Part shown: positions 23,919 to 29,785 of the stretch, piece by piece
Position numbering within the stretch: the first letter of the stretch is position 1
How the letters are laid out: every line of letters starts with the position of its first letter
Source of the DNA: Hyphochytrium catenoides
Taxonomy: Eukaryota; Protista; Hyphochytriomycota
Direction of reading: 5' to 3'
NCBI GenBank assembly: GCA_900088475.1
Contig: FLMG01000277.1
Coordinates: forward strand, 49,492-113,491
DNA: 64,000 bases
Program-made: the position numbers and the translations under genes
Notes under the pieces: model-generated
What the model was told of the DNA's origin: nothing
Databases searched by the model: none
What the model saw: only the letters and a program-made list of their open reading frames with translations

Positions 23919-25624
23919 TTACAGGACAGATACAGTGTGCTTTCTTTTTACAGCCACCGCATTCTCCAGAGCCTCATTCGCCGCTTCCTCTACCGCCTCT
24001 GCTATCTCTTCTCCTACCACAGCTGGGCAGAGACCGTCAGCACTAATTTTGACAGGGCTCCGCTCTTTGCCAAATAGCATTTCATGAACACAGACCCCTC
24101 GGAGTCGACGTCGAGCCTCTTCATACTTCTCCTGGAGCCAGCTTTGATTGCTCTTGTCCCCCTGCAAAAGTGCAGGATTGCGAGCCTCGTCCGTTATAGT
24201 GCTCTTTTCTGTTTGATGAAATACCATGAGGCCCAGTAGGACTGGTAGATACCACAGAGAGGTAAGGAACACTTTCTTGGAGTTTGCTACGACGGGATCC
24301 CTGATGANNNNNNNNNNNNNNNNNNNNNNNNNNNNNNNNNNNNNNNNNNNNNNNNNTAGATAGAGGCAATATGCGTTGATAGCTGTGCCCTCTACTGCGA
24401 ACATGGCACTGGTTACACCTCCGCAGTAAGCTATTGCTGGCAAAGGTGCCAAGTAGGCTGTGTACTTCATGATGAGTGCAGCCGTCCTTTGGCCTTTGAG
24501 ATTGCCATTAGTTTCTAGTCGTCTTTAGCTGTGACCAGAAGGTAGTCCATCTCTACGTACCCGTCGGATCGTTTACTGGTACCATCTGGTGCCCTCCTCG
24601 GGCATAGTCCTTTCTTAACTTCCATGCTAAGGCGAAGAAGTGGGGAAATTGCCAGCAATATAAGATGCTGCGAGAGGAAGAACAGGGCAGCATAGGCAGA
24701 CCGAATAAGTTATACGGTTAGTTTATCTTAGAGAAATAGCATGTCCAGGTGAATAGTCGTTACCTGGCTGCTAGTGCTGCTTCTGGTGAGACAATGGTTC
24801 CTGTGGCCGCAGCATAACCCATTAGGGGTGGAATGGCGCCAACCACCGACCCAATCCAGGTGTTGATTTCCGAGCGCCGCTAAGGCGAACAACCTTTAGA
24901 CTCAGGATGACAAGCCGTGTTCCAATGTTGGGGCGCGTTTACCTTCAAAGGAGTGTAGACCCCAGCGTAGAGAGCGATATTAAGTGCTCCTAAGCCTGCC
25001 GTAAGGGGATTGCACCCTAAAGCTAGAATGGCTGTGCTGGCAGTACCACTGCCTATAGCCCATGCTGCAGCTTGGCCCTAAGTGTGAGGAAGGGGAAGTC
25101 AAAGAGCCGAAGAACGCATGATAAAGAAACTGTTCCGATACCATTGATACGCGGCCCGACGGCAAAGGACGCATCTGAGTCCTTTTCATGAGTTTGTCAC
25201 TGTTCTTCTCGTACATCTGGTTCAACGTGTTTGCAGAGCAAGCAGCCAGCGCGGTTCCGACAGTTGCAGATGCCAGTGCATCCCAAGCGATAGGAAACCC
25301 CGCCATTAAAAAGCCAGCCCCCGTAGTCATTACTACAAGCCCACTCAGCCGCGCCTTAGATAATTCAGATATTGTCTGGAGAGTCAGCCGAGGAGCCGTA
25401 GAAGATTTAGCTTTGGCAATACCGGCCTTGGCGCCCTCATTTTCCACCCCAGCGGCTGGACCATAGGCGCTTGTACTGGACGCTTCAATATGTGTCGCAC
25501 TTGGGGCAGAGCGGGATAGCAGTGCAATTGCCACTCTAGTGTGCCCTAAGTGGAGGATGGCATTGTCCCTGGATCTAGCACCAGATCTAGCCACAAGATC
25601 ACGGGCGGTAGATATTCGGATCAT
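23919..25624 (-). CDS. COX10: Protoheme IX farnesyltransferase (heme O synthase), mitochondrial
   Basis: Five exons with short introns give [88 protein letters not shown] and [10 protein letters not shown]. An N-gap at 24308-24356 lies in the last exon. Confidence 0.95.
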
Positions 25625-26586
25625 CCTGTGGGTCGGGCCACTGGCCAAGGAGCCCGAGAAGCCTTCTAGTATCCTCTCATAGAAGAGCTTCTCTCGCCGC
25701 GGGTACTTAGAACGCAAGTGGCAGTACCTAGCACAGCTTGGCCCCGCGACGGTCTCACTGAGCGCACAACCTTGGGAAGCTCCTTTGCCCGGACCCCCGA
25801 TCAGATTATAAGACCGCGCTCCGTCTCTGCGTTGTCCAGGTCAAGGAAGATTGCTCCCACTTACAAGGGCGTGCTAGCAATGATGATGCAGAGAAGAGCC
25901 TCACTCAACTCAGTAATAATAAGTATACAGGTGAGGCCTTGTCTGTCGTGCTCCCAGTCTCCACTCATCAATCAGTCAGTCCACCACACTTACAGGAACC
26001 CATAATGCGTTCAGTATATCTGGATACCGATCACTGCTAGACAGATTGTGGGGCATCAGGCCATCATTATTAGATCAGACGATCCTATGAGATACGGCAA
26101 TGTGGGCACCACCTCGGTTAACCACTATCATGGACGGCAGCTGTGAAAAACTTGGAATCGTCAACAAATTCCTTATATTCATTCGTAGAACTATTACTGT
26201 GAGAAATGCAATACCTTTTTACAAGTCCATCCTGAATAAAATACCCACCAAACGCTATTATTCGGTATAGCCTTCAGCATCCCCCAGGACTGGGCGGGCA
26301 CTAATAATGATGCCTGTCCGTTTCTTCAAACAGCGTTTCCTCCATTAGCATTCTTAACAAGTCTCTGCACCAAAAGGCATCTTCATCTCACCCATTCGCC
26401 ACCACTCCAGAGACCAGAGACTGCCATCGGCCAGCTCATGATAGCGCTTGGCGCATTCCCTTGCAGAGAGAAGCGGGTCCAATGAGCACTCTCTTCACAG
26501 ATCCTGTTCGATGAACGCTAGCAAGTGTCATATTGGTTAGCACTAGAGTCTTAGTGGAGCTTCAACAGGAAAATTAGGTTCTTGTC

Positions 26587-29158
26587 ATGGAGCTCTGCAG
26601 GCTGGCAGAAGTTGAGCCTTGTGCGATTCACCGGGTATGATAGATGCATTGTTGTCTAGTGGCACTATTGTTGACTTCTTTGTCTCTCAGTTCTATCCGG
26701 ACCTATACAATCCTCAGGAATCTATCTTACTCATACGTACAAGCGACCAAACGTTATAGTAGGTGTTCCCTCCTGAGCAGCTTTTGGGTAGAGCTATCTG
26801 ATCTGACGACTATTTCCAGTGCCGTGTCTCCCTTGTGCCCGAACTGCGGTGCTGATCTCGAAAATGGGCTTCTGGACGCGAAAGCTATCGTCTGCCCTCT
26901 AGCCGGGTGCACGTTCAACCTGGAAAACGGTTATCCTATAGAGGGACCGTCCTTCCGTGGTCTCCATTCGTACACTGTCTCTGTAGATTCATCGGAAAGA
27001 GTATATCTAAGGTTGCCAGACCGATGGCCAACCAGCTGTGGCAAAGACTTTCGCCAGCCAGTGGCTCTGGATAGCTCCTCAACTGAAATAATTGTTGTCA
27101 TTGGGGCAGGGGCCACAGGTACAACCCTCATGACTACGTGCGCCGGGTGTAGCAAATGCGGTCGTTTCTTGGTTCTATTATTCCCTATCCCGAACTATCC
27201 ACTCCGCTCGTTATCTTAGACTTTTACTATGTCGCTCTGTGCTGGTATCTTTTCATGCGATAGCAACATCATTTCACGCCATGATGACTATAGGTAGTGC
27301 AGCGGTGGAAACTCTACGGAGAGAGGGCTATGCTGGTCGCATAATCATGATTAGCGCTGAGGTTGTCGGGGGAATCAACAGGTAATATTAATGCGCGGCT
27401 CTCCCTCTATCCGTCCCCGCATTTTAAGGTTGTTTGTTGTTAGGCCTGAAATATTTAGATCGCTAGAAACGTTCGACCCTCTACTGCCGCCTGTATGGTG
27501 GTTCGAGGAAGATTACCAGGAGAGTCTCCAGTGCGATTGCTATTGGGGTTGCGAAGTGGTCAAAGTGGATGCGGACAAGAAGCTTCTGAGCCTTCTAGAT
27601 GGGCGTAGTATTCAGTTCTCTAAGCTACTCATTGCGTCTGGCAGTATACCCAGGATCGCTATCGGGGTACCAGGTACCCCAACTGCTTCTCAGCCCAGAC
27701 CAACCTACATTGGCTGACCCTGAGTGTTTAGGGATGGAAGATTGCAAGAACGTCCATATGCTGGGCTCCATGGAGGAAATTGCTGCAGCAGCTAGAAGCT
27801 GCCAGGATGCGAGGAACATTGTCATCTTAGGCGAGGGCATCATGGCCTTGGAATTTGCACATGGCATTGCAACAACTCCGTCCAGCCTAGAGAAGACCAT
27901 TACACTAGTTAGTGAGGCGCCTGTCCTCCGTAAGCTCTTTGGCAACGAAGTCTCGGGCTTTCTTTGCGAATTCCTTGCTGAGCAAGGCGTACAACTGGAG
28001 TCAGGATGCCAAGTTATTGGTAGGTTTTTTTAAGGAATGGTAGCCTAAAGACGCACTAAAAGAGTTTTGATGACAGGACTGGAGAAGGATTCAGCTGGCA
28101 TGGTGACTAAAATGGTTCTAGATAATGGTACATCGGTACCGGTGGATGCCGTGATTTTATGCTTGGGCTGGATGCCCAATACAGCCTTCCTCAGGAGCCA
28201 AGAGTCCGGGGTGCGGCTTACTGAAAGAGGAGCCGTTGAAATCAACAAGGACTTTTCTGCTGGACGGGATATCTGGGCTGCAGGTGATTGCGCTACGATC
28301 CTCGCTTCTATCCATAGTCAGATTTATGCTGGAGACGAACAGCAATGGCAGAGGAGTCTAAGACATGGAGAGCGGGCGGCGCTAAGCCTCCTAGGCAAAG
28401 CATCTCCGAAGGGAACAGGTTTGACCGTTCTCACCTCCATCCTCAGCAAGAGCAACAAATGTCTGAGATTCGTGGGCCAGCCCAGTTCAGAGATGGACAT
28501 GAATCAGCCACTGATTAGAGATCTGGGGAACTCAAACTTTGCAGCTTTCTATCACAATACAAAGACCAAGGATATCACAGCTGTCGCAGTGATGGGAAGT
28601 GGCTCTCTTCCTTCGTTGCTTTGCCACTTATTCTCGACTGGTCGTCTGCCGTCTCTGGAGGAGCTTGGCAACCTGGAAAACTTGGGCCAGCTAGGAGCTT
28701 GCCTAAGTCCAAGGCGTGATAATGCTACCTCTATTATAGAGGCGCCTTCACCAGACCCTGTTGAAGTGAGGTTGAATCCTCTTCTTGAGGAACATAATGT
28801 ACGTATTGTACACCTAGCCCAATCCCCCCTCCACCCCCTTGATAGGCCTGCTTCCTCGTGACTATGCTGTTGTTGGCTAGCTCTTCTTTACCCCGAGTTG
28901 GGAGAACGTGTAATGACTGACGACCCTTTCGCTTAGATCCTCCGTCAGCTATTTAGCCGGTTCGACCCTCTGGAAACGGGCTCTATCTCAGTGGAGCATC
29001 TCCCAGCAGTGCTGGAGCTCTTAGGTGACCGTTTAGAGGAAGAAGAGCTCCAGGCTGCAATCAACCGACTTGATGAAGATAAATCGCGAAAGGTGAAGTT
29101 TGCTACATTCGTTACTTGGTGGCAAACCATACCAGAGGCCATTCTCGACGGGCCATAA
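26587..29158 (+). CDS. AIFM3/ferredoxin-reductase-like flavoprotein: atypical Rieske-like domain + FAD/NAD(P)H oxidoreductase + C-terminal EF-hand pair
   Basis: Exons at about 26587-26634, 26691-26758, 26820-27118, 27293-27381, 27443-27672, 27731-28019, 28077-28798 and 28937-29158. Motifs are ILLIR..YAVSPLCPNCGADL..IVCPLAGCTFNLENG, IVVIGAGATGSAAVETLRREGYAGRI, KLLIASGS, IVILGEGIMALE and IWAAGDCA. The last exon reads LFSRFDPLETGSI..LDEDKSRKVKFATFVTWW. Confidence 0.82.
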
Positions 29159-29266: not shown

Positions 29267-29785
29267 TCAGTCCTTTTTCTTCGCTGTCTGGCTTTCTTTG
29301 AGCTTTGAAGAGTTAGACGTCGCAGCGCCGTTGGTTGCCTTCTCCTCTTCTATAGACTTGGTCTCCTCAGAGTGAGCCCAGCGCTTGGTAATCCATACGA
29401 AGAAGGAAGAGAAAACGTACAAGTTGACACATGCCAAGATAGCAAACGTGCCCCAAAACTTTACGGCAGGGAACGACATGAAAGGAGAGGCGAAGGGTTA
29501 ACATTAATTTACATCACGGTAAATACGGAGGATCGTGTAGAGAAGTCTTACCCAATAGTTAAGCCCAAGGTACTCCTGCCAAACGGTCGTTGCTCCTGCC
29601 TCCAGCCCGATGAGTTCTGCAAACTCATTTGCGAGTGGGCTCTTAGAGAGTGCCACACATATCTTGTTCACCATCACAGTATGCCAGTAGGTTACGAAGA
29701 GCCAGCAAGCAAGAAGGAGGCCGACAAAACCATAGCTGAGAATCCAGGCCAGGAGGCCAGGACGCCTCTCACTCTCACTAGCCAT
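29267..29785 (-). CDS. Small two-exon membrane protein (141 aa, 2 predicted TM helices, C-terminal KKxx)
   Basis: Exons 29552-29785 and 29267-29458 join in phase 0 (tgg|gtaag...aag|ttt). There are two hydrophobic stretches, and the protein ends AKKKD*. Confidence 0.72.

Follow-up and report, generated by a model that had tools for sequence, protein, structure and literature searches.

A window of 64,000 nucleotides (nt) from the genome of Hyphochytrium catenoides (contig FLMG01000277.1, positions 49,492 to 113,491 of the forward strand; "the window" refers throughout to this whole stretch, and coordinates are counted from its first letter) carries a predicted gene for a highly divergent flavoprotein of the AIFM3 type, the 3' end of which is the subject of this analysis. 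The segment 28937-29158 (+) is probably the terminal exon of a seven-exon gene running from approximately 26637 to 29158 (about 654 codons), in which a divergent AIFM3-type core would be followed by an EF-hand lobe predicted to act as a calcium-independent docking module. The fusion itself, i.e., the attachment of the EF-hand exon to the reductase gene by means of a predicted splice, appears quite likely.

The product of this last exon (exon 7) is a genuine two-EF-hand lobe of the centrin/calmodulin type and not a chance reading frame, in agreement with the preliminary description of the locus, which had called it calmodulin-like. It matches the Pfam families EF-hand_7 (E-value, E, of 2.3e-8; 34.7 bits for a cut-off of 30) and EF-hand_6 (26.1 bits for a cut-off of 25), and a phmmer search of all Protein Data Bank (PDB) chains retrieves centrin-2 (2obh and 2ggm, E 4.8e-13) and calmodulins (E around 1e-11), with residues 2-61 aligning to either lobe of these proteins. 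Its neighbours in the ESM Atlas are EF-hand clusters without exception. The AlphaFold2 model computed from the single sequence, of moderate quality (mean predicted local distance difference test score, pLDDT, of 67.7), places helices at residues 2-9, 19-29, 35-46 and 55-64 and strands at residues 16-18 and 52-54. These strands fall at positions 7-9 of the loops, and the topology is that of two successive helix-loop-helix motifs, as in an EF-hand pair. The probability of finding 73 open codons by chance is approximately 0.05. The full exon was indeed absent from the list of open reading frames (ORFs) available for the window, as previously remarked, although its last 55 codons are listed there as a GTG-started ORF (28991-29158).

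The last codons of exon 6 (gaa cat aat, ending at 28798) are directly followed by GTACGT, and both the donor and the acceptor of intron 6 lie between codons (phase 0). The predicted exon 6/exon 7 junction reads ...GAACATAAT/ATCCTCCGT... at the nucleotide level and ...EEHN/ILRQ... at the protein level, and the presumed branch A of the intron, in a CTGAC motif, sits 16 nt from its 3' end. That this GTACGT/TAG pair joins in phase 0 to an exon of 73 amino acids (aa) had been proposed before, and verification of the frames by script supports it: once joined, the coding sequence of the gene is open throughout, up to the TAA at 29156-29158. Retention of intron 6 would add 20 codons followed by an in-frame TGA at 28859-28861. 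The introns between exons 2 and 7 measure 175, 62, 58, 57 and 138 nt. Apart from intron 6, those of the gene range from 57 to 175 nt and have GTA donors, and one of them likewise contains CTGAC.

The position of exon 7 leaves few other ways to express it. It contains no in-frame ATG, its frame begins exactly at the acceptor TAG, and the sole upstream in-frame ATG (28913) terminates at that same TAG. Therefore, in the absence of a start codon of its own, exon 7 must be spliced to something upstream. It starts 138 nt past exon 6 on the same strand, and 108 nt separate its stop from that of a convergent gene (29267, - strand); a promoter and first exon of its own could not be accommodated in these distances. 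The profile of AIFM3-type proteins described below stops at residue 199 of exon 6, and the exon remains open for 41 further codons up to the donor; therefore, the 41-residue linker and the EF-hand lobe are additions to the family core. Including the 20 codons of a retained intron and the stop, the open run past the domain end amounts to 62 codons, with a chance probability of approximately 0.07. In our reading, the end of the linker (LLEEHN) extends the first EF helix, as EEQIAEF does in calmodulin. A search of the genome (61 Mb in 4759 contigs) found exon 7 to be single-copy. The closest EF-hand encoded in this genome is only 35-36% identical to it, and exon 7 is therefore neither a piece recently derived from a calmodulin or centrin gene nor a young pseudogene fragment.

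Among the other explanations, the one that survives best is that the EF-hand frame is an unexpressed relic of a separate gene or of a lost exon, the protein ending at the in-frame TGA within intron 6. We consider this doubtful. The degeneration of the calcium loops is what drift would predict, proteins of the AIFM3 family usually end near the point where the homology of exon 6 ends, and an EF-hand was found in none of the approximately 270 relatives considered below. Nevertheless, neither a run of 73 open codons nor a profile match above the curated Pfam cut-off would be expected to persist in a relic. In addition, the domain begins right at the acceptor, and the 41-codon extension of exon 6, which would otherwise be unexplained, closes with a donor that is in phase and consensus-like. 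The features of the favored gene model are collected in Table 1.

Table 1. Predicted exons of the AIFM3-type gene, its last intron, its EF-hand loops and the neighbouring convergent gene (window coordinates; HMM, hidden Markov model; FAD, flavin adenine dinucleotide; NAD(P)H, reduced nicotinamide adenine dinucleotide (phosphate)).
Feature	Coordinates	Strand	Description
Exon 1 (probable, tentative)	26637..26752	+	ATG at 26637; donor ac/GTTATA at 26753; N-terminal strands of the Rieske-like domain
Exon 2	26820..27118	+	Rieske-like domain (CPNC...CPLAGC) and start of the FAD-binding GxGxxG; family HMM 41-136, E 1e-17
Exon 3	27294..27381	+	FAD-binding Rossmann helix; family HMM 140-161; frame open when joined
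Exon 4	27444..27673	+	FAD domain; partial Pfam Pyr_redox_2 match; family HMM 186-234
Exon 5	27732..28019	+	NAD(P)H-binding Rossmann part (GEGIMA); Pyr_redox E 2e-6, Pyr_redox_2 E 3e-6; family HMM 242-329
Exon 6, domain part	28077..28675	+	End of Pyr_redox_2 (AAGD), Pfam E 3e-11, and diverged Reductase_C-like domain
Exon 6, linker part	28676..28798	+	41 residues past the family C-terminus; Pro/Ser/Leu-rich; ends ...LLEEHN
Intron 6 (138 nt)	28799..28936	+	GTACGT donor; CTGAC at 28917-28921; TAG acceptor (...gcttag)
Exon 7	28937..29158	+	73 codons (28937-29155) and TAA (29156-29158); EF-hand pair and 11-residue tail
EF loop 1	28964..28999	+	DPLETGSISVEH; Leu at 3, His at 12; aligned to centrin-2
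EF loop 2	29072..29107	+	DEDKSRKVKFAT; Arg at 6, Lys at 9, Thr at 12; aligned to centrin-2
Convergent gene	29267-29785	-	Two open frames, 29504-29785 and 29267-29479

At the 5' end of the gene, the frame of exon 1 has no stops and its phase is compatible with that of exon 2 (acceptor at 26819). The segment 26700-26753 weakly resembles residues 91-108 of an AIFM3-type protein (P0008), with 56% identity over 18 aa. Further upstream, an ATG at 26588 starts a 17-codon frame (MELCRLAEVEPCAIHRV, 26588-26641, +) whose stop overlaps the presumed start ATG. This short frame could be an upstream ORF, or it could indicate that the 5' part of the gene model is incorrect.

In EF-hands, position 12 of the loop usually provides a bidentate Glu. 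Both loops of exon 7 were reported to lack this residue in the preliminary description, and their alignment with the centrin-2 loops (DADGTGTIDVKE and DDDETGKISFKN) confirms it. Neither loop conforms to the canonical 12-residue calcium loop, in which oxygen ligands occupy positions 1, 3 and 5, position 6 is Gly and position 12 is Glu or Asp. In loop 1, Asp1, Thr5, Gly6 and Ile8 are retained and position 11 is a Glu, and in loop 2 Asp1, Asp3 and Ser5 are retained. With His and Thr at position 12, Leu3 in loop 1 and Arg6 in loop 2, the lobe is unlikely to bind Ca2+ in the canonical way, and the residues present in the loops suggest that its Ca2+ binding is probably weak or absent. In centrins, an Asn at position 12 is reported to result in a low-affinity or inactive site, and the C-lobes of centrins, which are open, use a hydrophobic pocket to bind targets and hydrophobic helices even when Ca2+ is absent (PMC8622359). 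The combination of degenerate loops in exon 7 and Ca2+-free docking by centrin C-lobes leads us to favor docking over Ca2+ sensing.

A second alternative accepts the splicing of exon 7 and makes the lobe a functional sensor of Ca2+ by which electron transfer is switched, as with the EF-hands of NDB1, an external NADPH dehydrogenase of plants, or of NOX5/Rboh, and we regard it as unlikely. EF-hands fused to a flavin dehydrogenase do provide Ca2+ control in NDB1 (PMC4587368), the residues retained in the two loops, together with the Glu at position 11 of loop 1, are compatible with such a function, and predicted and measured Ca2+ binding may disagree (PMC8622359). Nevertheless, there is no Glu or Asp at position 12 in either loop, loop 1 carries Leu3 and loop 2 carries Arg6 and Lys9, and in centrins the milder change to Asn12 already makes the site weak or dead (PMC8622359). 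Moreover, the loss of conserved flavin-site motifs in the core may leave little activity to be switched. The earlier suggestion of a Ca2+- or IQ-peptide-coupled redox protein can thus be retained only in part: the loops lend no support to Ca2+ coupling, and binding of an IQ-like helical peptide fits better with a docking lobe.

The upstream part of the gene had been described as a Rieske-like/FAD reductase, and both the exon-wise Pfam searches and the relatives recovered identify the arrangement as AIFM3-type, with a Rieske-like domain followed by Pyr_redox_2. The Pfam Rieske match in exon 2 is borderline (20.6 bits for a cut-off of 20.3). In this domain, the motifs CPNC and CPLAGC replace the CxH...CxxH pattern of the cluster ligands, which the gene product does not display; both His are lost, leaving four Cys. 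The Pyr_redox_2 domain includes the FAD and NAD(P)H Rossmann motifs (GAGATG and GEGIMA) and AAGD, with exon-wise Pfam matches reaching E 3e-11. A family profile HMM built from 89 AIFM3-type proteins (529 positions) is colinear with exons 2-6 from position 41 to position 519, and its positions 336-519 correspond to residues 5-199 of exon 6. Pfam Reductase_C is not reported at E <= 1; the family profile nevertheless aligns up to position 519 of 529, but the gene product lacks the PFFW motif and extends 114 residues further. In the family alignment, GxGxxG (FAD), GxGxxA (NAD(P)H) and AAGD are retained, whereas RIEHW, PFFWT and LPYDRP are changed to DEQQW, LTVLT and GGINRP, respectively.

A search with exon 6 against 1.84 billion representative proteins gave only 164 matches reaching E 0.001, the best of them with E 1.9e-11 and 35% identity, and all ten of the long top matches display the AIFM3 layout, Rieske + Pyr_redox_2 (+ Reductase_C). 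The gene of the window is approximately 26% identical to AIFM3-type proteins, whereas the members of this family are usually 45-50% identical to each other, from chytrids to Hymenobacter (word search from a Lithocolla protein). No second AIFM3-type locus was found in the genome. By sequence, the reductase core (26820-28675, +) is an outlier within the AIFM3-type family. Since the flavin-site motifs (RIEHW and PFFW) and both Rieske His are lost, an active reductase should not be assumed. Separately, nearly the whole of a short contig of the same genome (G000:C2368, 1064 bp; 138-992, +; locus L009) is occupied by a Pyr_redox_2-like open frame whose ends are cut by the contig; it is 25% identical to an AIFM3-type protein (E 1e-14) and corresponds to a further flavoprotein reductase.

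The divergence of the core raises a third explanation, in which the whole locus is decaying or non-functional and the four-Cys Rieske domain, the lost motifs and the dead EF loops are products of drift. The low identity to a family that is otherwise well conserved from fungi to bacteria, and the changes in the RIEHW, PFFW and PYDRP motifs, point in this direction. In contrast, an open frame of approximately 654 codons spans the seven exons, whose phases are correct and whose GT..AG sites are intact, the GxGxxG, GxGxxA and AAGD nucleotide-binding motifs are retained, and no other AIFM3-type locus was found in the genome, making such decay very improbable. Finally, the idea that exon 7 belongs to a separate small gene starting inside the 138-nt interval is scarcely credible: in our own reading, an ATG at 28864 opens an 11-codon frame able to join it in phase, but this would require a 40-nt mini-intron (GTTGGG near 28897), shorter than the 57-175 nt of the introns of this gene, with a poor donor and with a promoter within the last 60 nt of the neighbouring coding exon, and the product would be a single lobe of 84 aa.

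The layout combining Rieske, Pyr_redox_2 and EF-hand domains had been presented as unfamiliar, and our searches agree with this view. No sequence resembling exon 7 was detected in the 150 nearest representatives (phmmer with exon 7, together with a loop pattern). A Pfam scan of 63 long relatives gave no EF-hand among the 25 most frequent of 38 families, and no EF-hand Pfam entry is listed for the best 120 of 4382 AIFM3-type proteins. In total, approximately 270 of the nearest relatives were covered, which represents a sample and not a census of all architectures. In the literature, we found no paper describing AIFM3 or Rieske joined with an EF-hand in one architecture. Three metagenome loci (L012-L014) matched exon 7 with 33-54% identity and were discarded, as they are generic EF-hand genes in which tblastn shows no reductase. 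Another EF-hand locus, in the genome of the window (L006; G000:C1946:44746-47628, -), consists of a 2490-codon open frame with at least nine separate EF-hand-pair matches to exon 7, which suggests a giant protein with a long EF-hand array. The product of the gene studied here is most likely a flavoprotein of the AIFM3 type to which an EF-hand lobe, probably blind to calcium, has been appended.

If this reading is correct, splicing of the 138-nt intron would append a flexible linker of 41 residues and one lobe of the centrin/calmodulin type to a flavoprotein in which a Rieske-fold domain, with four Cys as ligands, is followed by an FAD/NAD(P)H Pyr_redox_2 domain and then by a Reductase_C-like domain that has diverged. 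The lobe would then be a tethered and largely calcium-independent docking module. It may clamp a hydrophobic helix belonging to a partner protein, to another subunit or to the reductase itself, and this docking could localise or gate the flavoprotein. By analogy with the centrin C-lobes, which bind their targets without Ca2+, docking is the more likely of the functions considered here. A more specific version, in which an AIFM3-type flavoprotein gained a lobe that docks on the reductase or on the helix of a partner and thereby gates electron transfer, with Ca2+ or some other signal as the trigger, seems to us an outside chance.

Several points weigh against the reading proposed here and must be considered together. 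The splice between 28798 and 28937 is predicted from the genomic sequence, and further in-phase donors at 28760, 28766 (GTGAGG) and 28808 (GTACAC) are also compatible with the acceptor at 28936. The donor is most likely the one at 28799, and the use of the others would alter the linker by a few residues and leave the EF-hand lobe fused regardless. Exon 7 resembles the other exons in codon usage and ranks at the 96th percentile among 336 short open frames of the window, which lends weak support to the model, as this test has little power on 73 codons and also scores the intron, once its stops are removed, as coding-like. The search of the 1.84 billion representatives with exon 6 returned no self-match, no sequence with more than 46% identity and no orthologue, and scanning the metagenome contigs with the same exon revealed no relative. 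The degenerate loops, the lost Rieske His and the lost flavin-site motifs could also reflect relaxed constraint on the whole gene. Lastly, the docking function is proposed by analogy.

Proteins of the AIFM3 type occur widely; they are strongly conserved and poorly understood. Three changes are concentrated in this one copy, namely the rebuilding of a metal site, the loss of flavin-site motifs and the addition of a calmodulin-like lobe, and it may be viewed as a natural experiment in which a redox enzyme would become a protein that is regulated or serves as a scaffold. If the gating version proved true, the protein would represent a soluble and independently evolved counterpart of the EF-hand control of NOX5/Rboh and NDB1 and, together with its four-Cys Rieske-fold domain, a new regulated redox module in stramenopile-like protists. 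The analysis also amounts to a correction of the gene model, since a complete domain would be lost from any annotation ending at 28861. The case is of limited value, as it concerns a single gene in a single genome, and EF-hands rank among the most promiscuously fused domains.

Regarding the genomic surroundings, the convergent gene downstream of exon 7 (Table 1) encodes a small hydrophobic, probably membrane, protein that matched no Pfam family. On the other side, divergent from the reductase gene, an open frame at 24983-25717 (-) matches UbiA prenyltransferases (Pfam E 7e-16) and is probably an exon of a COX10-like haem O synthase.

The closest known systems are the AIFM3/AIFL-type proteins themselves (Lithocolla, a chytrid, Batrachochytrium and Hymenobacter), which have the same domain order and share the Rossmann and AAGD motifs with the gene of the window. 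They end directly after Reductase_C, whereas this gene adds the linker and the EF-hand lobe; it also differs from them in its low identity (approximately 26%), in the replacement of the Rieske His and in the loss of RIEHW and PFFW. For exon 7, the best sequence matches are the lobes of centrin-2 and calmodulin (PDB 2obh, 2ggm and 1ooj), which present the same fold of paired helix-loop-helix motifs. Loop 1 resembles the third EF-hand of centrin-2 (ETG-IS), which likewise lacks Glu12. In contrast to centrins and calmodulins, which are free proteins with four EF-hands, exon 7 encodes a single lobe fused to an enzyme and, compared with centrin-2, the position-12 acid is missing from both of its loops instead of one.

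The Ca2+-dependent type II NAD(P)H dehydrogenases (NDH-2), such as plant NDB1/NDB2 and fungal NDE1, likewise combine an EF-hand with a flavoprotein of the Pyr_redox_2 superfamily that has two dinucleotide-binding domains. They belong to a different subfamily without a Rieske domain, and the nearest relatives of the window gene are the Rieske-bearing AIFM3-type proteins rather than NDH-2. The EF-hand of these Ca2+-dependent enzymes is an internal insertion with canonical loops, unlike the lobe encoded by exon 7, which is C-terminal and follows a linker. In NDB1, the EF-hand gives Ca2+ control of NADPH oxidation (PMC4587368). NOX5, DUOX and the plant Rboh proteins have unrelated catalytic domains (a ferric reductase membrane domain and an FNR-type dehydrogenase), and their EF-hands are N-terminal and calcium-binding. 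In these oxidases, tethered EF-hand modules regulate electron flow by docking on the flavin dehydrogenase.

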